Below are positions 28,201-47,003 of a DNA stretch of 64,000 bases, piece after piece. The stretch comes from Podarcis melisellensis (taxonomy: Eukaryota): the NCBI GenBank assembly GCA_964234715.1, contig OZ174284.1. One strand, written 5' to 3'. How positions within the stretch are numbered: position 1 is the stretch's first letter; each line of letters opens with the position of its first letter. The notes beneath the pieces are model-generated. The model saw nothing but the letters and a program-made list of their open reading frames with translations. It was not told the origin of the DNA and ran no database searches. The position numbers were made by a program, and so were the translations under genes.

Positions 28201-29130
28201 TTCGTTTAGTTGGCATGAAATTTCAGAATACATTTGAATGTTATATGTGCATGTCTTCCTTTAATGTTTGACCCTAAACTTAATTCCTCATAACTGCATG
28301 TTTGGAATATCTATTAAGAAAATTGACTTTTAAAAATAATAAAATGTTAATATATTCATTTGAAATTGAAAGTTTTATGAATTTTAGTCACTAGCTATGT
28401 TGGTCTTATGGTTATTTTTCAGATACTTTATAAAAGAACCCCAGACCTTAACGTAATCACCTCTTATTTTTATAAAGAACGCATTTTCAAAACCACAGTG
28501 CAGTAATCCTGTAGAGTACAACTGTGAAACTTGTAAATATCTACACAGAAATCTTGTTGCACTTCCTTTTGCAGAAAGGTAAATCTACTCTGCATAAGTA
28601 ATGCCTTCAAGTGGATCATGCGGCTTAATTCCACAGATCAATTAATTTCATATACTGATGAGCAAGTGTAGGAACCTGCTTGACTGAACTAATTTGACTG
28701 TCATCGTTGACTTTAAAATCTGCTTTAGGAATGTGCTATAATCTTGCTGGTAAAATTATGCATCCTTTCTGCAGAAAGCTGTGGACTCAATGACTTTCCT
28801 CCAAATTTTGCATTATAAAAATATTAGCCATAGCCACCTCCATATATAGGGATCAGTTAGCAAAATAAGTAGAATATGCTAAAGAAGCAAATATTACAGA
28901 TCCATGACATGTGAAGCATGCTAAATAAATCAAATGCATAACGCTGAACATCATTAATTAACCTTGCTGCAAATCCATTCTGAGGTCAAATGTTCTTAGA
29001 TACCACATTCAGTGTCATTCTTCTGATGCAAATTTAATACATAGAATGTTTTTACAGAATGGTTGTGAGTGAAATTACTCTAATGTAATGGATATTTGGG
29101 AATAATAATTAATCTTTTTCCATTTTCTAG

Positions 29131-29262
29131 CAAAGGCAAGCCGGCAGGTTGACATTGCTACTCAAGGATGGTTCATTGGTCTCATGTGTGCAGTTGCTCT
29201 TCTCATCCTGGTTTTGCTAATAGTTTGTTTCATACGGAGAAATAAAGGTGGAAAATATCCAG
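29131..29262 (+). CDS. NRCAM: NRCAM transmembrane exon ([44 protein letters not shown])
   Basis: ttttctag|CAAAG...CCAG|gtacga; diagnostic L1-family TM segment and KGGKY. Confidence 0.97.
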
Positions 29263-29929
29263 GTACGATATGTTGCACTGTGAGTTTGAATATTTAATTC
29301 TATTTACATTTAATATATTCTCTACTCTTAATTGCCCAAATCCAGATTACTACATCAAGGAACCCAAATGATTGTGGGTTTTAAAATAAAATAAAATCAA
29401 ATAAATCAAATATTTTCACAGTAGTTCCCTGGGTCATATCACAAAGTGCCTTGAAAGGCACTTTGGGATTTATCCATGCTGATCAAACAGACTTCTACTG
29501 ATACAATGGGATTTCTGTCTCCATTCCTTCCCCTGATTTCCTCAAAATCTGGAGGGTCTCCCAACCTTCTGGGGCTGATTTTGAGGGTATGTTGAGGCCT
29601 AGAGGCATCATGAGAGGAAAAAGAAGTTTTGTTGCATGCATGGAAGTATTTCGTGTGGGCAGAGCTGCAGTATTAGATAAAACAGTTCGCCATACAGTGT
29701 GGGAAGAAACTGGGAGTAGAGAACTACTTGTGCTGCTCTTTGGATCTGTAATTTGATTCAGATTTATTTCTGGAATTTTTGTGAAATCTTAAGAATTTGA
29801 AGCAATTTAACTTGGCAGCAATTACAGATTCAAAAGTGTGACATAAATGCAATTATATAGAACTGTTGTAATCTTGAGTTCAACCCTGAAAATAGTTCTT
29901 CCAATTTCAAATAATGAGTTTTCATTTTC

Positions 29930-30700: not shown

Positions 30701-31838
30701 TTTAATTATAAATGGCAGGCATGGTCTGTGTTGCCCAAGCAACATCATCTCTTTTACTTTATTTAGATTTGGGTTTATTAATCATATCTGAGGGTGGGTG
30801 AGACCTTTTCCTTCCTTTCATACTGGTGATGATAATAAAAATGGTCTAAAGACAATTCACCTTGATTTAAAACAAATTACACGGAAATCAAACATACAAG
30901 TACACTTCAACTAAAACTGAATATAAACATAAAAATCAGCTGTTATGCCTACCGGCGTGGTTGCTCAAGAGCAAACAGGCAAGATCCCCACTGATCTTTT
31001 CAAAGGCTTTCTTATTGGTGCAAAAACATTTACAGTGCAGAACGTCTCAATTCCATGTCTTGCTCAGTCACTAGCAGAATCTGAGAGTGGGCGGTCCTTA
31101 AGCTTTCCCTAGCAGAGTAGTCTCTTTCCCCCCCATCCGACGCCTCCCCTCTCTGCGCATAAACCTACTGCGCAGAGAGGGCATGGCTAAAGGGGGGCCT
31201 GCCTCCCCCCCTTTGCTCATGCACAGTGTCTTGGCTCTCTCTTGCATCCTCTGAGCCCTGCATCCCTTCCCCACTAGAGGCAGGGCTTTCCTCCTCCGCG
31301 GAGGAAGTGCTGCTTCTCACGATCTTTGGAGGCTCCCTGCAACCCACCTGCCCTTCAACCTCTCGCCTCTGAGCTGATGGCAGTTCCCTGACATCAGCTA
31401 AAGAAAGTATAATATAACTCCTGCAAGTTACAAAGCCTAAAATAATACCAGATACCTCTTTCCTGCTGTTTCTGTAGTAGAGGCTTCTTTAGAAAATGCT
31501 CTGGCGGGATGCAACCCAAAAGAAAGTTGCTGTGTGTTATGATGAAGATCAGCATTCTGTCTGCAGATCTTTATGTTCCATGGATATAGTTGCAGTCCAG
31601 TTTATCCTTAATAACAGCAAAGCACTGCTGGATTCCAGGGTGATTCCAGCATGAACCAAGGCAGTCCTTCCCTTTTTATAACTGCAGTAGGAGATGGAGA
31701 TTGCAAGGGTTAGGTGACTGGCATACAGCTGCTGCTGCTGCACACAGGGTCCTTCAGAAAGCACACACCCCACTAGGGGTTGGCATGCATCACACTTCCA
31801 GTCCTTGCTAATTGTTATCCTCCATTTGTATGTTTTAG

Positions 31839-31917
31839 TGAAAGAAAAAGAGGATGCTCATGGTGACCCAGAAATACAGCCTATGAAAGAAGACGACGGA
31901 ACACTTGGCGAATACAG
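31839..31917 (+). CDS. NRCAM: NRCAM cytoplasmic exon (VKEKEDAHGDPEIQPMKEDDGTLGEY)
   Basis: gttttag|TGAAA...TACAG|gtaagc; ends in phase 2. Confidence 0.96.
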
Positions 31918-33966
31918 GTAAGCAATTATGTTAATTCATACTGGTCATGTCTGCTTGATTTTGAAGAGAACTACTTATTTTTAACTCTTGCTCCACACCG
32001 TTCAGAAGTATTTAATACTGGAGGTGTTAGTAGCTTCATCAGCTCAGCATCCTCAAACATGATGTCTCACCAACATTAAGAATATCATGTGGTGTCACCC
32101 ACAAATATATTGATGTAGGACCATAGCCCCACTGCCATTACCATTGCAAGGCAATTCACAGGCATAGATACCAACATATCTGATAGTTAATGATCCACTT
32201 GACTGTAAGGGAAATTTGAAATTCTATGGGTGCAGTAATTGTGGCAAAGCATAACGCAAGGCATGGCAAGGCATGGCAGCATCTCCACTGCTGTAGGAAT
32301 GTTTCTAGAGGAAGTTGTGGAGTTCCCCCAGTGTTTCATTGTCTTCTGGTAGCCTTGTTCCCACACAGCCTCTGTGGATTACAATCTACCGGAGCAATCC
32401 TATGCATGTTTACTCAGAAGTAAGTACCATTGTGTTCATTGGGGCTTACCCCCAGGTAAGAGTGCAAGGATTGCAACCTATGTGGAAAATCTTAAGATTA
32501 TACATTATGATCAACCACAAATGTAAAATACAGATCCAAATTGCAGTATTGTTAACCGAATACTTAAAACAAATTTGGATCCAGGGTTTTACTTCATTCA
32601 TATGTCTCATATATTTGCTTCCAGTGTTCACTGTGATTTTGGGGCAGTTTTGTGCATGTGTGATTTTTATTTTTACTTATTATTTAATCTTTCTGCCTTA
32701 TTCCTTTCAAAGCAGGAATAAAGCAAAATATATGAATGTTCTGTATTAAATCCAGGCTTAGTAGTAAAAAATATAATTGATTTCAGCGGTACTCAGATTT
32801 TGTTTTTTGTCTTGGTAGTGTAATAATCAAACATAGATGAATTCTAGGCATCTTGTTCAATGGTAGGAAAAAAAATAGCTAAGTGATATATGAAGGGTAA
32901 AAATCATCAACTTGAATGGATAAAAATTAGGTGGTAGTTTCAAATTAGCTGAACTTTGTTAAGTTCAAAGCCAGTTCATTGTTATCTAATAAGAATAATA
33001 AATTAGCTATATTTCTTGCCTCACAAAGGCGTGCTATTCAAACTACTAATAACAATATATAATATAATTCAAAGAAAGCTTTATCATTTTAATCCAATGT
33101 GTTGGTTTAAAGAAGAAAGGATGATTTATTTAAAAGGTTAGCCTTTTGTGTTTTGTTTGTGCGTTCTATTATATTTTAAGATATGTTTATGTATCATTTT
33201 AAATACTTTGTTTCTTGTATGTCATGTACTGTAGTGCTCTAATTGTCATTTTTAACGAGTTCAGTATATTTTTGTAGCTTTCTATCTATAGGAAATTAGT
33301 CTTTCATTTAATTGTTCTAAGCTGTGTATTGTAGTGACAGAATTGTTCACAAAGGGAAATTATTCAAATGCTAACTTGTACCTATGATAGCTTTCTGTTC
33401 CCGTGTTACCTCATAGTCATGCAGAATTATGCCAATTCTCTGGTGAGTTTTTGTTGGGCAACTCGGTTCTAGGTGTGATCATCAAATCTATTATCATGTG
33501 GGACCTAAGCCAGGATTTTGGTCTATGTCTTGAAACAACTAGCATGTTAATGTGTGAAATCATCTATGCCATCGTCAGTTAGTTGTACGGTTAAGTAAAT
33601 GATTGCATGAATCTTTACTACCAGATTTTATATGTTTTTTAAGAAGTCGCTCATCTAATTCATTTTGCTAAAAAATCTCCTTTTAGACACAAGTTCCTGC
33701 GGCATTCACAGGTAATAATAGGATTTGCCCCCTTTTCTCTTTAGAGACAGAGCAGATGCAAGCAAATATTCAAATCACGGAATATGTGTTTGTAACTTTT
33801 GTGCAGCCCAGCACTGCTACCATTACCGGTAATCACTTTCCTGGTTCATGCTGCCTCAGGCAGTTCTAAAATGTGATTCAGTGTGTCTTTGAGGGAAACT
33901 TTTTTTGTTTTTGTTTCATTTCCCCCCCAAGAATTCGAGCATTTTGAACTTTTTTCATCACTTCAG

Positions 33967-35761
33967 GTCCATGTCTCCGTGGACAGTAAAGAAAACGGAC
34001 AAAGGAAGAAAGAGAGACTGTAGTGATGTCACTCGTTTTCCCGAAGCAGACCCTGCCTTTACCAAAGCAGTGTCTGTGTGGTCTCAGAGAGCCAACCTAT
34101 CCAGAAGGTCAGGAGAGCAATCCTTCATCACCAGATCAGAGACCTCTCACAGGACAGTCAGGAACTCTCCAAAGCATTTAAAAGTAAATTCCATCTCCCC
34201 TTCACTTTGTCGGAGGAAAAATAAACCAACGGAATGGCAGCCTGAGGGTATTTCTAGATACCACACTCTGCGGCAGCAAATAACAGAACTGGATGAAGGG
34301 TCAGATTCTCAGGTAGGACAGCGTCCCCCATATCAGCAAAGGTCCAACAAGGGCCCGGCCTCCACACAACAGTGGTTCAACCACACAATAGGCCCCAACT
34401 CAGATTCGGAAGACAACTACAGGGGCCAAGTCAAGAAGGTAAGACCTTCTGGTGCTCCTAGTATTGCTTGTAGTTGCTCCAACTCTGACAATAGTTCACT
34501 AATGAGGTCTGTTGTATTACCCAAAACTACTACCATTTTGAAGGATACCCATGCTGTGGCCAAAAATGCTGTAGCTTCTGCCATGCAGGCTGAACCTTCT
34601 TCAATAATGGACCCCAAGGCATTACACACAGTGATTACTGTGGCCTCCTATGAAACAACTAGAGAGCACTGCCAGTTATTGGTACCTGAAGCTGTGGACA
34701 GTGTGGAAAAAAATTCAGCTTCTACAAAAAAGCCTAAATTTCACAGTGACTTGGAGGATGAGTCGCCTCCTGAGAATGAAGAAGTATCATTTGCTTCCTT
34801 ACTGGAAGTAGGAAAGTATAGTGAGCCCATACGTAGGTTCAAAATGGAGACTCAGAACTACTTATTCAAGCATATTCAGAAAGAACTACAGTTAAAACAC
34901 CACAAAACTGAACAGTCAGCAGAAAGTAGCATGATAGATAAATCCCTTCCGGTTCATTCAGCTGTTCAAAAACTAATTCATAAAATCTGGAATAAACCCA
35001 ATGTAAGACATGTAGCTCCAGCAATTCTACATGAACTGTATCCTCTTCCAGTGAACAAAGCTGTGTTTTGGGGGACCATACCCAAGATAGATACTGCAGC
35101 AGCTAGTAGAAATGCTAAGACACGCTTCTCTGGAGTTGCGGGCTATGTCCCCAAACATCCAGTTGATAGAAAGGTTGAGGCTATGATCAAGAGATCATTC
35201 AGCTTAGTTTCAGCCCAGCTTAGAGTATCCCTTTATTCTGCCTATGCGTCTAGGGCTTTATTAGCCTGGCTGGAAAAGGAGCAAGCAATAAGGGGAGGCA
35301 CACTGAAGTCACCTTCAAGCAAGTGGAGAACACGTATTCTGTGTGGAATTGCAGCTAATTTCATTCATGATGCTGCTCAGGATTCTCTCGAACTCACAGT
35401 TAAAAACATAGCATGTCTCACAGTGGCATGGAGGGCTAGCTTGTTGCGTCATTGGCCCTTGGACCTAGGCATGAAATACCAGCTGTTATCCCTACCATAT
35501 TGTGGTGGAACTTTATTTGGAGACTGCTTGGGACAGGTTTTCAAAGATTATGCCCAACATAAGAAATCCCTCCAACAGCTGAAAAGGAAAATACACTCTT
35601 CCACTTCTTTTCTTTATTATCCTCACAGGTGTCACACAGCCTATCAGTTCCCCACTAGGTTAAAAAGAGGGAAAGGTTTGCAGTCCTTACATCTCATGAA
35701 TATGAAAGGGTATAACACTCAAAGAAGTCACAAATGTACCAAGAGGAGACTTCTGACATAA
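33967..35761 (+). CDS. Putative alternative terminal exon of NRCAM (~598 aa): low-complexity N-half plus LAP2alpha-like (DIRS1 Gag-derived) domain at ~34943-35572
   Basis: Pyrimidine tract ttttttcatcacttcag| is in phase with the GEY-AG donor (gives EYRSMSPW...). The ORF is uninterrupted to TAA at 35759-35761. Motifs LPVH..VQKLIHKIWNKP, PKID, PKHPVDRKVEAMIKRSF, AYASRALLAWL, NFIHDA..DSLEL, R...LRHW..D...K..L..LPYCGGTLFGDCL resemble the DIRS1-Gag/LAP2alpha consensus. Confidence 0.72.
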
Positions 35762-35793
35762 ATGCTTTCCAGGAAGCAAAAATAGTTTCAGTC

Positions 35794-35799
35794 AATAAA
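35794..35799 (+). promoter_or_regulatory. Candidate polyadenylation signal for the alternative terminal exon
   Basis: AATAAA 33 nt after the stop, followed by a GU/U-rich stretch (TGGTTTCTTGTCTTG, ~35835-35849). Confidence 0.55.
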
Positions 35800-36036
35800 A
35801 AGATGACACAAGGGGAATGAGAAGCTATTTCACATGGTTTCTTGTCTTGATCAATTTAAAATGCAGTATCAGTTTTAAACTCTTTCTGTATCACTCTCGC
35901 TGTCTCTGGTCAATTTCCTTCTTTTCACTAGGGGAATAGGTAGATTATTTAACCAACTGTGTCATTTGTTATCCATACTGGATACATCCCCCCCCCCCCC
36001 CCGATTTAGAAGGGGATATAGGAGTCTCAGAGTGGA

Positions 36037-36061
36037 GACACACAGACACACACACACGCAC

Positions 36062-36124
<63 letters not shown>
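36037..36124. repeat. (CA)n/(GA)n compound microsatellite
   Basis: Direct read. Confidence 0.95.
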
Positions 36125-36127
<3 letters not shown>

Positions 36128-39100
36128 AGACTGAGGTAATTAGTACTTTCTGTTTTGCTCAGCCAGCACAATATTTAAAGTCTCTCTGTAGAGTTTGACT
36201 TCTGGCTTCATAAAATTCACAAAGGGGTCCCCTGCCCCTTATTTTTAAAATTGTGTTCAAAATAGTAGCCCCAGCACTTCTTAGCTCCAACAGTTCTGGC
36301 AGAAATTAACCAACCATTCCTATATCATTTAAGAAAATTAAAGTTCCCAGGTGATATATTGTTAGTCCAGATAATCCAGTTATTTCATCTCAGTGGGAGT
36401 GGCTGCTGTGCCTACGTTCCTATATTACAACAGCATTGTAAAACTGATTCAGAGGGACTTTTATTCCCTTGGGCCGTTTTATTATCTAAGAGTGCTTCAT
36501 ATCCAGACAGACTTCCATCATTGCCACAGAATATTTTTAACATACGCTTGCTTCTTTAGACTGATTTGAAAATGCATTTCATATTGGTATCTTCACAAAG
36601 TGGTGCATTACTAAAAAATTAATCCAATAACACCTGCCAGCCAGTTAAATATATCCTACCTTTACAAGAAAACCAACACTGCAATCCTGACCATATTCTT
36701 ATATTAGCATTTCAAACATTACCAGTGCAGCATGGCTCCTTCTCCTGCCACTCAAGTAATATAGGGGCCCTGTGATCTCAGAGTTTGACCAACACTCTGG
36801 CAATTCCACCTTTAGGGAGTTTCATTCTCAAGAGCCAAAAAGTTATGAGTGGCCTTGTTTCTGTTGTAGAATCTCAAAACAACCTTCTTTATCTGTAAAA
36901 CAGATGCAGAGCTTATACATGACATACCCCAAGATACCCTAAGCTTTACAGTCAAAAACCTAGTATTATATCTGTCTCAGTATCCAGGAAGGGGTAGTTT
37001 TCCTTAGCTTTGAAAAACCTTGAATGATATCCTTTAAAATTACTTGTTTTAACAATGGGGAAATCATTTGTAAAAAATGTTATTTTAAAACATTTTGTCT
37101 ATTTTTTTTTAAGTTGACCTGCTACTTGTAGTTAAAATAAAAATTAGCAATACACTTCATATTCTAGATATTACTAAAAGCTAAGCAATGCAGAGATTTA
37201 TTTCATAGGAAGTGATTCAATTGTAACTGAAATAATGTAGGCCTACTGAAGCCAATTTGTCAAAAAAATCCCTAGTGAGATAAGGTAAATTTGTAATTAT
37301 CCTGAAGGCCTTTTAAATTGTTTTACAGCATAAAATTTATACTTCTGGGATGTCAAAAATTGGTCCTTTATTTCCTTTCTCTTATGGTCCCATTGATTTA
37401 GGCATCTCGTAGATACTGGAAGCATACCAACATACCCAAATTCCGATTCTGTATATTAAGAATTAGGATGAGATCAGAGCAATTTAATCATTTTCTCTTC
37501 AAGGCATTTAGGAAAAAGCAGTGCATACTGAATAATTTTGGTTATCTCCCTATTTTTCCCCTGAAGTGAGAGACAGTTGTGCTCTCAGAGCCATCATTAA
37601 AAGCTGCCAGTCAACTCAATACATCCTACCAAGTTCCTTCCCCTTCCACTGCAATGAGCGTCACTGTATTCTTTTTTGCTCCAGTGATTTTTTTAGCTGA
37701 ATATAGTGCTAATCATATTTTGAGTTATTTTGCATGTTGATCTACACAATGGGTGCATGCACAGACAAACCAGCCTTCTGCTTTTTGACTCGTTATTGCA
37801 TCTGCCTGCCCCTGAAGTGAAAAGATTATTAACAGGTAATGAATGCAATGTCGTTGGAATGATGTGACAAAGTTTACTAAGAATTTGTAAAACTTTTTGA
37901 TGCATTTCTTTACTGCTCTGTTTCACCCCCAAATATTATTTGGCTTCTGTTTACTTATGCCCATCTTCTCACTTTGTTATGTATCTCATCCATCACCTTC
38001 AAGTTTGCTATTTGTTTCATAAAACTCATAACAGTAAAGTGGAAAAAACGGTTATGTATAAGTAAAAAGAGGGAAGTTCTAATTTGGCCAGAGAGCTGTT
38101 CTTCCACTGAAAGGAAAGCACTTTGATCCAGTGGAGGCTTCCATAAACAGAACAATAAGGGAACAGATTTTTGATCTTCTGCCTCCTGTCCCCTGTTGCC
38201 AAGTCTATTCTAGATGATCTGGGGATTTTTATTTTTTTTTATTTCTTTGGAGCAGCATGGGAGGTCCTGCTGGGGGGCGGGGCTCCAAGAGAAAGGAGAA
38301 ATTGGCAGAAAAATACCTTATTTAATTCACAGAAGCCTTTGTTAAATCAAAGAAGCTTCCATCAGGGAAGGGCCACAATTAAATACATCACAACATGAGT
38401 AACAGGTGATATATATTCAGAACAGACCCCCTGAAATAAACATTAATTCCATTAATTTCAGTTGTTCTACTCTGATGTGTAGCTAACATTTGATATCACC
38501 TTCTATAATACAACTTTTAGAATTATGTTCTTATGTAATATAAAACTTCATTTAAATGTTGCTCAACTTATTAGTTTATTAAAACTGACTTTCTACTTGT
38601 AAATAGCAAGTACTGGAGCGAACTTGCTATTGTAATGCCTCATCTGACAATAAAATTCATATATCCTACAATCTATATTTTCTTTGTAATTGTTCCAGTA
38701 TTCATGCTACTTACTGATATACTTGGAGGAGGGGAAAAGCATTCTGTTTTAAGTTTTGAAGGATATTTTTCAGTTGTTGATCTTAATTTCAAAGATTTCA
38801 GTAAGTATTCATCTGCAAAGGTAGTCAATTAAAAAAAATTGTATAGGTTTTGAGGCTATCTAAGCAGGAAAAGAGAACATTCCGGGTATTATATTAAATC
38901 ATCATTAGAAATAACGCTACTGTAAAAATGCCCAAAAGCCCCAACCCTTAATGTGGAGCTCTTTAAAGCCCACAACAACACAATCAATCTTGCTTCTGAA
39001 GTATATTTCTTAGCAACAAATTAACATTCATTTCCCAGTAAGAATCAAGACTTTGGTTCTCCTCCCAGGATGTACCTGGGAGACATCTTCCTTTCTGTGC

Positions 39101-41640
39101 ATCTTCAATATACATTAACAATTAGCTACATTAACAAATTTGAAGGGCAAAGAATATGCCATCTTGAAGTAGAGAGCAGAACATTCTTTTGTATAATGTA
39201 TCATTCTTGAGTAAGTGATATTGTGTTATTCCTGGAAGAAATCCCTTTTGAGTTAAAGGCAAAATCTAGAATTCACCCGCTAAATTCCTATCTATAGAAT
39301 ATTTTGAAGGCATGTTTTACTTAACCACATGAGCAAAATGGATTTACGTTCCATGCCTCTTTTGGTGTGGCAGGATCTGCTTTTATTTGTATAGACAAGC
39401 TTCTTCTTTAGGTTTTTGTTGATTGTGCCAATTGCAAATGGTTTTAGTATTTCTTTTGTATTTGTAAGTCGCTTTGAGTCATTTCTATGCGTAAAGCGAC
39501 TAATAAATATTCATCTTGGTAATGTGATTCTCTTATTTCTGTCTGTGCCGTGGCAAAAGGTGTTTCACATTCTTTCGTGAATGATACAGATTAGGACATC
39601 TAAATACATTTAGGTATTTAAGTACATTTAGGTGCCTTGAATAGAGTGCCTCTGAGTGTGTGCAGAGTTTCAACTCAAGCAGTGTTTTAAAAGATCATCA
39701 AGACTCCTAACCATATACAGAATGCCTTTTTTGTGGTCAACATTTGTTGGAACTTATTTTCAAGTGACTTTGTATGGGCAGGAATGGAGAATCTGTAGCC
39801 CCTTAAGTTGTTGCTGGACTACAACTCCCATCATCCCTGATTATGAGCCATGCTGGCTGTGGCTGGTGGGAGCTGGAGTCTGACAATATCTGGATGGCTG
39901 CTGGATTAATTCAGCAGTATTGGGAAGCTGCCCTAGCAGCACTTGTTCCTGCTTTGCCATGGAATGTCAGATGCTCATGACTATGTGCGAAGGGGATTTT
40001 CCCGCATTGTCCCAAGCTTTGCATGTTTCTCTGACATCACAGGGGGGGGGGGAACCTGCCATTGCTGCATGCGTGAAAGCCCTGTCTTAGCTCTGCAGTT
40101 TAAAGTAGCTAGTGTTCATAGAAGAAGTCAGTCCAGTGCACACAGTCTATTTGACTTTTCTCAGGTGACCAGAAACAGATGTGATAGTTGCTCCTTCTAC
40201 TAGTTACGCAGAAGAAGGCATTTCAGTGGGAGTTGCTTCGGCATTTAGGTATGAAAGCAGCTTCACCTGCCAACATTTCCTCTTCTGCACAATTGTTAGA
40301 GGAATAATCTCCAGTTCTTCTTTAACATCTGGACATTATATTTGACAGATGTAATAAACGTTCATTCCATTGATCCAGTTTATGGAACGTATTGCTAGCC
40401 TGCGGTAATTAACTCTTTATTTACTCCCTGGTATCTGCTCTCAAGATGGCTACTATTCTCTCTTCATTCAGTTGAATTGATAGAACTTAGTTCTCAGCCT
40501 TATTCAGTTGGGACCTCTGCCACCATTCCTGTTTCTCAGCATCTAGTAATCTTGAATATATTTATATGGTCCCCCCTAAACACACAGACACACACACACA
40601 CACACACACACATGTGTTGCTGCTTTGAACATGTTCCTTACTCACTGAGAGGGGGCTCCCTTGGTTCCTGAGCTATATATTTGCTGCAATCCCTATGGAA
40701 ACATTGTTTTCACTTCCTTTTTTAGTGTGCAAAAGACTGAGGGAACCCAATTTCCAAATCTGATTTTTGCATATGCTGTAACTGTGCACTCATGCCAGTG
40801 TCCACTTCCGTGCAGGTACACACACTCGTGTAAATCTGCAGTTTTGTTCTTGTTTGTTTTTTTAATTATACAGACATTAGACTCTGCATCATTACTAGCA
40901 TATAGAAAAATCACAGAAACAATGCAACCAGCTGTGTAAGTATTTTTTCATTATTTAGATTATAACTGTAAAATAAACCTAAAAGAAATAAGAATGAAAG
41001 AGAAACTGATGAAAAGAACTTATTTCTTTGAAATAAAAAAAAAGTCCTGTATTCTACGGTAATAAATAAAACTGCTTTCTGAAGTTAGTGCCACTACACG
41101 TTACTTTTGAAACATTTTGTGTGAAATAAATACAAGATTGAAACAATTTGAAAACTGCTTATGATCCCCTTTTAAAAAAGAGTATGTATAGTTTTTTTTC
41201 AGTTAAATCCAAATATTTTGTGCTACAAAGCATAGGATACAACAATGCAATGAAAGGTATTATGTATTTCAAACCCTTTGTGCTTTATTCATGGTATACC
41301 ACCCAACCAGATCTGTCTTTGGTGGGTGATTGTGAATTTCGTTGAAACACAAATCAAAAGACATATTCATAGTATTCAAAAGGAAAAAGGAGAGCTCAGA
41401 AATATTTGGATCTGTGAATGCATATGATTATTTCGCAGGTGGCATTTCTATTTTGTGGTTAATGTGTATACAGGTGCATATTTGTATTTAATGCATAATA
41501 CAAAACTTTGGGTGATAGTTAACTAGTTATTCTCTGAGTATGATTACCTATGCACATCACCCTTTAATTTTAATTTGTTGTGTTCACTTGGGTTCCTTTT
41601 TTATTATTACTGAGAATAAATCACAAGTGTGAGTTTGTCA

Positions 41641-46222: not shown

Positions 46223-46234
46223 GTCTCTGGAAAG
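46223..46234 (+). CDS. NRCAM: NRCAM 12-nt RSLE microexon (creates the YRSL AP-2 sorting motif)
   Basis: atgtag|GTCTCTGGAAAG|gtaagg; symmetric phase 2; well-known L1-family neuronal microexon. Confidence 0.9.
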
Positions 46235-46765: not shown

Positions 46766-47003
46766 TGATGCCGATGACCACAAGCCTCTAAAAAAGGGAA
46801 GCAGGACACCTTCAGACAGGACTGTGAAAAAAGAGGACAGCGATGATAGTTTAGTTGACTATGGAGAAGGAGTTAATGGTCAGTTCAATGAGGATGGCTC
46901 CTTTATTGGACAATACAGTGGTAAAAAAGAGAAAGAACCCGCAGAAGGGAACGAAAGTTCTGAGGCTCCTTCACCTGTCAACGCAATGAATTCATTTGTC
47001 TAA
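46766..47003 (+). CDS. NRCAM: NRCAM last coding exon ([13 protein letters not shown]...[29 protein letters not shown]...NAMNSFV*)
   Basis: tttttcag|TGATGCC...GTCTAA; FIGQY ankyrin-binding motif and the C-terminal SFV PDZ ligand diagnostic of NrCAM. Confidence 0.97.

Follow-up and report, generated by a model that had tools for sequence, protein, structure and literature searches.

We report that an intron of the cell-adhesion gene that we read as NRCAM contains, in the lizard Podarcis melisellensis, a long coding exon or gene (positions 33967..35761, plus strand; 597 codons and a stop), which is with very high probability an anciently domesticated, single-copy descendant of the Gag protein of a DIRS1-like retrotransposon, kept by selection. 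All positions refer to the window, i.e., the whole 64,000-nucleotide (nt) stretch of contig OZ174284.1 (NCBI GenBank assembly GCA_964234715.1) that was analyzed. The open reading frame (ORF) shows two properties expected of domesticated genes, the same genomic position in distant lineages and purifying selection, and it represents a third, sauropsid domestication of DIRS1 Gag. A broader statement, in which the domesticated Gag is in addition spliced onto NRCAM as an alternative terminal exon, appears to us evenly balanced between acceptance and rejection.

An Intronic Reading Frame with a LAP2alpha Domain

The original prediction, made from the letters alone, singled out this ORF as the longest of the window, in sense orientation within the host gene, and on both counts it holds. 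Counted from an upstream TTG, the frame spans 33905..35761 on the plus strand and 618 amino acids (aa) in the ORF listing of the window, more than threefold the runner-up (178 aa); this difference, together with its conservation, rules out a chance ORF. The acceptor context reads ...ttttttcatcacttcag|GTCC ATG TCT, with a pyrimidine-tract CAG at 33964-33966 on the sense strand, and would set the exon start at 33967. The 597-aa product is encoded by 33968-35758, a conserved ATG (33971-33973) forms the second full codon of the exon, and the TAA stop (35759-35761) is followed after 33 nt by an AATAAA hexamer (35794..35799, plus strand), a candidate polyadenylation signal. Since the upstream NRCAM donor at 31917 ends in phase 2 (its AG joined to the first G of the exon forms an Arg codon), a splice between the two would continue the ORF frame; direct reading of both borders and of the hexamer thus bears out what had been claimed for them.

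The series of motifs previously taken for a LAP2alpha domain proved to be one. Residues 315-527 (34910..35548, plus strand) score 41.4 bits (E 1.5e-10) with the Pfam family PF11560 (LAP2alpha), for which the cut-off is 25, and span positions 21-230 of its 234-position profile; the C-terminal domain of mouse LAP2alpha (PDB 2V0X) matches the product in a phmmer comparison with E 3.1e-9 over residues 29-230 of 235. No Pfam family was matched by the first 299 aa. In an AlphaFold2 model built from 61 aligned relatives, aa 285-550 (34820..35617, plus strand) form a confidently folded helical region (predicted local distance difference test, pLDDT, 80-97) and the rest is disordered, including the Ser/Arg/Lys-rich region encoded by the first 472 nt of the exon (pLDDT < 50); a basic KK.DK..KR cluster lies at the N-terminus. 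The best Foldseek match of the model is again 2v0x (probability 1.00, template-modeling score 0.47, root-mean-square deviation 11.8 Å), a moderate likeness of the predicted fold.

Two copies of aa 285-552 are predicted to form a symmetric homodimer, with an interaction prediction score from aligned errors (ipSAE) of 0.69 in three runs vs. 0.00 for the best of three controls, a mark attained by 21 of 30 solved homodimers and by none of 23 monomers. At least 94% of the contacts recur between runs (pLDDT at least 70), and the predicted interface extends along two long helices with i-to-i contacts at residues 403, 407, 410, 414, 417, and 424. This dimer may be remembered from the solved 2V0X structure, and it shows likeness rather than proof of binding. 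The product would thus combine a long disordered, Ser-rich and basic N-terminal half with a LAP2alpha-type helical domain that is most likely a parallel homodimer, as in mammalian LAP2alpha.

Origin from a DIRS1-Like Gag and Loss of the Other Transposon Parts

The LAP2alpha domain is derived from a DIRS1-like Gag (Abascal et al., PMC4495291), and the relatives of the intronic ORF point to the same source. An exhaustive HMMER search returned about 220 non-orthologous proteins that align only with approximately aa 324-541, at 23-35% identity; several of them run on into reverse transcriptase (RT; RVT_1) and RNase H domains, and the closest named ones are frog elements. Transposon Gags match the ORF product more closely (E 1e-22, 30-35% identity) than mouse LAP2alpha does (E 3e-9), and the look-alikes of the product in the Atlas are LAP2alpha clusters only. 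One Atlas cluster named ZNF326 is 77% LAP2alpha, and a number of annotated proteins of other vertebrates (P0163, P0173, P0195, P0227, P0291, and P0174) combine LAP2alpha with BAT2_N, SCAMP, NACHT-LRR, CEP63, kinesin, or spectrin; these fusions and the ZNF326 cluster are either annotation artifacts of intronic DIRS copies or further exonizations.

The ORF lacks each of the marks of an autonomous DIRS1-like element, namely RT, RNase H, and recombinase, terminal repeats, and multiple copies. No RT or RNase H remnants were detected in the window, where three DIRS Gag-RT polyproteins aligned by tblastn only with the Gag domain (34823-35590), and a search for terminal inverted repeats or an internal complementary region within 32600-37200 yielded only repeats at chance level (20-26 nt at 74-80%), so that the absence of these parts beside the ORF, noted at the outset, is now upheld by both searches. 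With respect to copy number, which the original prediction had left to be checked, a DNA run (X13, probably from the source genome) gave one contig with a flat depth of 33 over 32400-35940; because this depth equals that of the unique flanks, the ORF is single-copy, with no near-identical copies. A young or multi-copy transposon is therefore ruled out by the flat depth, the lack of RT and terminal repeats, and an identity of at most 35% to any Gag.

Two repeats lie close to the ORF. The segment 32394-32466 is a piece of a very high-copy repeat, squamate in appearance and resembling a short interspersed nuclear element (depth > 20,000 vs. 33 for unique DNA in X13), which accounts for all of the backward-jumping contig joints in the read table, and a (CT)n/(GA)n microsatellite (35962-36171) directly downstream of the ORF was excluded from the stretch used for contig mapping.

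We infer the following course of events. One DIRS1-like copy would have inserted in sense orientation between the GEY exon and the RSLE microexon of NRCAM before the lizard/bird split; it would then have shed RT, RNase H, recombinase, and terminal repeats, and its frame of about 600 codons would have been held open ever since by purifying selection.

Orthologues in Reptiles and Birds

A word-indexed protein search yielded 90 relatives, all of them orthologues, with 42-47% identity over 66-94% of the query; the full-length ones have 606-621 aa, and every orthologue carries PF11560. About 75 of the 90 are bird proteins of approximately 455 aa that bear the name "LAP2A protein, partial" and come from groups as far apart as cassowary and tinamous, galliforms, and passerines, and RefSeq contains stand-alone models of 611-612 aa for the black-headed gull (XP_063179239.1) and the whooping crane (XP_054668417.1). 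In the gull locus (L001) the order of transmembrane exon, GEY exon, ORF, and last exon is that of the window, and the same order is found in the cassowary (L003). A second reptile contig (L002) contains an intact copy of 595 codons at 75% nucleotide identity. When positions 28-48 kb of the window were compared by blastn with gull and cassowary, the aligned blocks were limited to the NRCAM exons, the ORF with its upstream border (33714-35676), two short segments (37702-37737 and 40720-40965), and the last exon with its 3' untranslated region (UTR).

The six intact copies, from six species, align end to end, and all of their indels are multiples of 3. Pairwise estimates by the Nei-Gojobori method (NG86), as distinct from a full-tree likelihood test, gave ratios of nonsynonymous to synonymous divergence (dN/dS) of 0.22-0.49 across the complete ORF, with 0.18-0.36 in the domain and 0.29-0.60 in the first 300 codons. 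The gull and cassowary copies of the ORF share 84-94% identity and show no frameshift; the intron around them is less alike (72-81%) and has many indels. The check for frameshifts and relaxed selection that accompanied the original prediction thus returned intact orthologues with dN/dS of 0.2-0.5. Lizards and birds diverged roughly 280 million years (My) ago. Since dS in the domain is normal (0.4-1.1) and dN is low, the comparison indicates selection at the protein level, and purifying selection across the entire lizard-bird divergence (~280 My) is the conclusion drawn from these alignments.

The frame is disrupted in several lineages. Two reptile contigs that are 97% alike (L005 and L006) have in common a 2-nt deletion (window 35333) and bear further private frameshifts, by which the ORF is a pseudogene in that lineage. 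Another reptile (L004), which shares 88% identity with L002, lacks 11 nt at window 34429, with a frameshift at about codon 155; 7 nt are missing from the domain in an anseriform-like bird contig (L010 2733-2750); and a bird 97% identical to the gull (L011 and L012, two runs of one study) has a 1-nt deletion near codon 158 (L001 10469) in both contigs. Lesions seen in a single contig could be assembly errors; those common to several contigs are real.

A Conserved Zone at the 5' Border

Conservation within the locus peaks outside the LAP2alpha domain, in a zone of about 650 nt (33714-34400) that straddles the 5' border of the exon. It comprises an upstream non-coding block (33714..33966, plus strand), which was delimited by blastn and alignment with birds and ends in the pyrimidine tract and CAG, and most of the 5' 472 nt of the exon (33967..34438, plus strand), in which a sliding dN/dS analysis revealed strongly suppressed synonymous divergence. 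Gull and cassowary are 93-97% identical across 33714-34400 and 95-97% identical in the upstream block, vs. 72-81% in the rest of the intron. Bird dS is 0.00-0.15 in the 5' 472 nt vs. 0.4-0.6 downstream; it is most reduced in the first ~120 codons (0.00-0.14), near 0 in the first 60, where dN equals or exceeds dS, and still low up to approximately codon 170. The two reptiles follow the same trend (dS 0.21-0.36 in the first 120 codons vs. 0.45-1.2 further on). Such suppression of dS argues for a nucleotide-level function that overlaps the coding sequence; the zone could be a splice/polyadenylation switch, a promoter with 5'UTR, or an NRCAM enhancer. A known structured RNA was rejected as the cause of this conservation, as Rfam gave only a sub-threshold match to a small nucleolar RNA (17 bits vs. 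41).

A TGCATG hexamer of the Rbfox type (33604..33609, plus strand) is present about 360 nt upstream of the exon in the lizard, the second reptile, gull, and cassowary; its significance is inferred only. Two further segments of the intron were detected in the comparison with birds. One is a 36-nt block (37702-37737; 86-89% identity to both birds) distinct from the RSLE exon, and the other a non-coding block of ~245 nt (40720-40965; 77-81% lizard/bird identity) without a consistent ORF, which is probably a conserved regulatory element.

The Host Gene and a Possible Splice onto NRCAM

The gene around the ORF is a member of the L1 family of adhesion molecules, which from its exons we read as NRCAM; its assignment to NRCAM rather than to another L1 paralogue is based on the C-terminal SFV. 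A conserved block with the transmembrane exon (29113..29271, plus strand, borders approximate) is 85% identical to the gull and cassowary NRCAM loci, and its gull counterpart translates to a transmembrane segment. The cytoplasmic GEY exon (31837..31917, plus strand) ends in ...GGC GAA TAC AG|gtaagc at 31917, a phase-2 donor; its borders are fixed by contigs of runs X1 and X9, which match 31837-31917 exactly but have unlike flanks and are thus spliced. The 12-nt RSLE microexon (46223..46234, plus strand; ag|GTCTCTGGAAAG|gt) was located by a pattern search (1 match vs. 0.02 expected) inside a block conserved with birds. The coding part of the canonical last exon (46766..47003, plus strand; SDADDHK...FIGQY...NSFV, stop), whose end reads FIGQYSG...NAMNSFV, is matched by Pfam Bravo_FIGEY with E 1.1e-16. 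In the gull, the ORF is surrounded by the gene of a 1321-aa immunoglobulin-domain protein on the same strand.

According to the proposed mechanism, splicing of NRCAM pre-mRNA would link the phase-2 donor at 31917 with the acceptor at 33966/33967, and polyadenylation would follow past the ORF stop. The exons through GEY and this donor are common to both routes, and the resulting isoform would keep the ectodomain, the transmembrane segment, and the juxtamembrane part. It would swap the canonical tail of ~80 aa with its RSLE, FIGQY (ankyrin site), and SFV (PDZ ligand) elements for a dimerizing Gag-derived tail with neither the ankyrin nor the PDZ motif. The choice between the two ends would be governed by 250 nt of near-invariant intron sequence before the exon together with the initial ~400 nt of the exon itself.

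Several observations favor this splice. The acceptor and the phase-2 donor are conserved, with matching phase, in all species aligned, and the ~40 nt that end in the CAG acceptor (33927-33966) are almost invariant from lizard to birds; the region just upstream of the acceptor is non-coding, as a 1-nt indel in L002 demonstrates. A precedent for a Gag exon in a host intron is provided by TMPO and ZNF451 (PMC4495291). The lack of a CpG island and of a TATA at the 5' end and the weak Kozak context of the ATG, described below, count in favor of the splice as well. In addition, it was noticed after the fact that in X1 the start of the contig over the exon coincides with 33964. This is the first base common to a spliced (..tacag|G) and an unspliced (..ttcag|G) path, and if both paths were present a de Bruijn graph would be interrupted there; the observation is suggestive only.

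Other observations weigh against the splice. The RNA evidence consists of assembled contigs from runs whose RNA nature is guessed, and no contig of the four runs joins 31917 to 33967, although rare forms are lost from contigs; the acceptor is crossed without splicing by one contig, and another, from X1, extends more than 270 nt beyond the AATAAA. The GEY exon in X9, and probably in X1, continues into sequence outside the window, as by the canonical splice. The probable RNA runs cover ~75-90% of the ORF, at a depth of 3-7 that is about that of the introns (also covered, at 2.5-5), vs. 67 for the GEY exon. The 5' ends of four short Logan contigs (L007, L008, L009, and L010), which were checked for spliced ends, are all collinear with genomic sequence. 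The position of the polyadenylation signal is unconserved (ATTAAA at +141 and +168 in gull, AATAAA at +587 in cassowary, none within 364 nt in L002); such signals could turn over, and this non-conservation weakens the terminal-exon model without excluding it. At the level of annotated proteins, the RefSeq models for gull and whooping crane are those of a stand-alone gene, and the longest NRCAM product of the gull (1321 aa) has no Gag tail. All species, moreover, retain the ATG that lies two codons into the exon. The disruptions in L005/L006, L004, L010, and L011/L012 indicate that the ORF is dispensable in these lineages.

A weaker point of the same kind is that no NRCAM-Gag fusion was found among the protein matches, as the plain search spanned only proteins of 328-1045 aa and the representative-protein search would hide any fusion inside NRCAM clusters. 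A profile headed by a longer frog homologue retrieved frog transposon Gags only, and a search with the bird 5' 167 aa retrieved one genomic, frameshifted copy, neither yielding a fusion; overall, this blank proves little. Thus, of the original claim that the ORF is a terminal exon of NRCAM, the acceptor and the phase have stood, and the junction contig (in four runs) and a conserved polyadenylation signal have not been found. The accompanying expectation that automated annotation might list it as an uncharacterized isoform was not borne out: databases hold it as a separate uncharacterized protein or under the misapplied name LAP2A.

Alternative Readings of the Locus

The strongest alternative, which we regard as less probable while giving it considerable weight, is a stand-alone gene nested in the intron. 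The conserved 250-nt block would then be its own promoter and 5'UTR, and translation from the ATG at 33971 would yield a soluble, possibly nuclear, dimeric protein of ~596 aa. RefSeq models the gull and crane genes exactly so (starting MSAW...), which fits the universal conservation of this ATG, and the strongest conservation is centered on the 5' border, as it would be at a promoter or transcription start. LAP2alpha is nuclear in mammals, and the basic N-terminal cluster joined to a LAP2alpha-like domain agrees with a protein of this type. The blank searches for an NRCAM-fused product and a junction contig point the same way, as does L004, in which the 430 codons downstream of the frameshift are still open with a dN/dS of 0.38 vs. 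L002. Against this reading, neither lizard nor gull has a CpG island at the 5' end of the ORF (observed/expected 0-0.4), and alignment of the upstream block revealed no conserved TATA; birds carry upstream ATGs in this block. The context of the conserved ATG is invariant, with T at -3 and +4, and is poor by the Kozak consensus. A perfect acceptor (pyrimidine tract and CAG), invariant over ~280 My, lies 4 nt before this ATG, and an intronic acceptor in sense orientation with a terminator after it would in any case capture transcripts of the host. The NCBI RefSeq support itself amounts to only two named stand-alone models among the matches.

A composite exon, which we consider unlikely, would be compatible with either the NRCAM splice or the nested gene. 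The ORF contains a lone strong donor-like site, the candidate internal 5' splice-site consensus motif AAG|GTAAGA (34439..34444, plus strand; 10499 in gull L001 and 10034 in cassowary L003), through which 33967-34438 would serve also as an internal alternative exon. The piece 5' of this site (472 nt in reptiles, 496-502 nt in birds) is always 1 mod 3; if joined to the RSLE or last exon, it would pass into phase 0 with an immediate TGA, giving a tail of ~157 aa followed by the normal NRCAM 3'UTR and without the LAP2alpha domain, and skipping of the donor would give the full ORF. The 14-nt context of the site is identical in seven intact copies (the lizard window, L002, and birds L001, L003, L007, L008, and L010), including the synonymous Val and Arg positions, and the zone of suppressed dS in birds extends over the first ~170 codons. 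Moreover, two independent lineage-specific lesions fall at or within 30 nt of it: the L004 deletion removes the site, and the L011/L012 deletion, 30 nt before it, turns the 5' piece into a multiple of 3 that is in phase with the last NRCAM exon. On the other hand, no read or contig supports its use, nearby contig ends miss it, and the highest nucleotide identity fades by about +350 to +400, before the donor. The motif also encodes a conserved peptide, KKVRPS, so that protein constraint explains part of its conservation, and chance alone should produce a comparable 7-mer in about one of every 10 ORFs of this sort. The most elaborate model, in which sauropsid NRCAM would have one isoform with a dimerizing Gag tail of ~600 aa and another with a ~157-aa variant, switched by the 650-nt element and placing a Gag domain for the first time on an adhesion receptor, is put forward tentatively, at somewhat less than even confidence.

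That the ORF is non-functional as a protein, either a decaying or young transposon remnant or a frame left open as a by-product of enhancer constraint, is highly improbable: the 5' part and upstream block do resemble a conserved non-coding element (with the first 60 codons as described), RNA coverage is low, and several lineages carry frameshifts, yet this reading is already contradicted by a ~600-codon frame open in the lizard, the second reptile, and birds across the whole class, by the low dN/dS (0.18-0.36) of a domain with normal dS, by the single copy, and by an identity of only 23-35% to any transposon Gag.

Discussion

The closest known parallel to the NRCAM-intron ORF is the LAP2alpha exon of mammalian TMPO, for which origin and mechanism have been described (PMC4495291). 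In both cases a DIRS1-like Gag ORF lies in sense orientation in a host intron as one large exon with PF11560, and encodes a long disordered part followed by a helical domain, which dimerizes in LAP2alpha and is predicted to do so in the sauropsid product. The hosts differ, TMPO being a LEM-domain nuclear protein of mammals and NRCAM, here in sauropsids, a transmembrane adhesion molecule. The Foldseek alignment of the product with 2V0X has only 19-20% identity, and the N-terminal 230 aa of the product have no detectable relative. Furthermore, splicing to the host is documented for TMPO, whereas for the NRCAM-intron ORF it is a proposal.

The second known case, ZNF451-L2a, uses the same Gag domain as an alternative last exon under moderate purifying selection (PMC4495291); its host is a zinc-finger SUMO ligase and it is confined to placentals, whereas the NRCAM-intron ORF is older and occupies an unrelated locus. 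In placentals, homology to LAP2alpha has been reported only in TMPO and ZNF451 (Abascal et al., PMC4495291). The different locus and lineage, together with the closer similarity to transposon Gags than to mouse LAP2alpha, make the sauropsid event a separate domestication, as originally proposed, and one older than both mammalian cases if the ~280-My date holds. Our literature search found no paper that links NRCAM with LAP2alpha, nor any on a sauropsid domestication, so the event is apparently undescribed.

With the Gag (ORF1) of the DIRS1-like tyrosine-recombinase elements the homology is confined to the domain, with best non-orthologous matches of 23-35% over aa 324-541; in contrast to these elements, the intronic ORF has no RT, RNase H, or terminal repeats, and is one copy, syntenic over ~280 My, with dN/dS < 0.5. 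If the nested-gene reading is right, it would also resemble ARC, PEG10, RTL, and PNMA, which are single-exon Gag-derived genes under purifying selection. These families derive from Metaviridae capsid folds (PMC11011659), in contrast to the different, coiled-coil-like fold of the DIRS1 Gag.

A practical consequence concerns annotation. The bird GenBank proteins P0016-P0090 and P0246-P0259, named "LAP2A protein, partial" or "Lamina-associated polypeptide 2, isoform alpha, partial," are orthologues of the NRCAM-intron ORF and not products of TMPO; their naming is an error spread by homology, and other orthologues are labeled "uncharacterized LOC." Recognition of the former as an NRCAM-intron gene, rather than TMPO-alpha, corrects a widespread annotation slip.

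Overall, to the two host uses of DIRS1 Gag described so far, both mammalian (PMC4495291), these results add a third and much older one, which is specific to reptiles and birds and lies within a gene for neuronal adhesion. If the ORF is a stand-alone nested gene, birds and reptiles would own a LAP2alpha-like protein. If it is spliced to NRCAM, the receptor would gain a self-associating tail and lose its ankyrin and PDZ links, a possible route to lineage-specific neuronal wiring or signaling. On either reading, the extreme nucleotide conservation at the 5' border marks a regulatory element.

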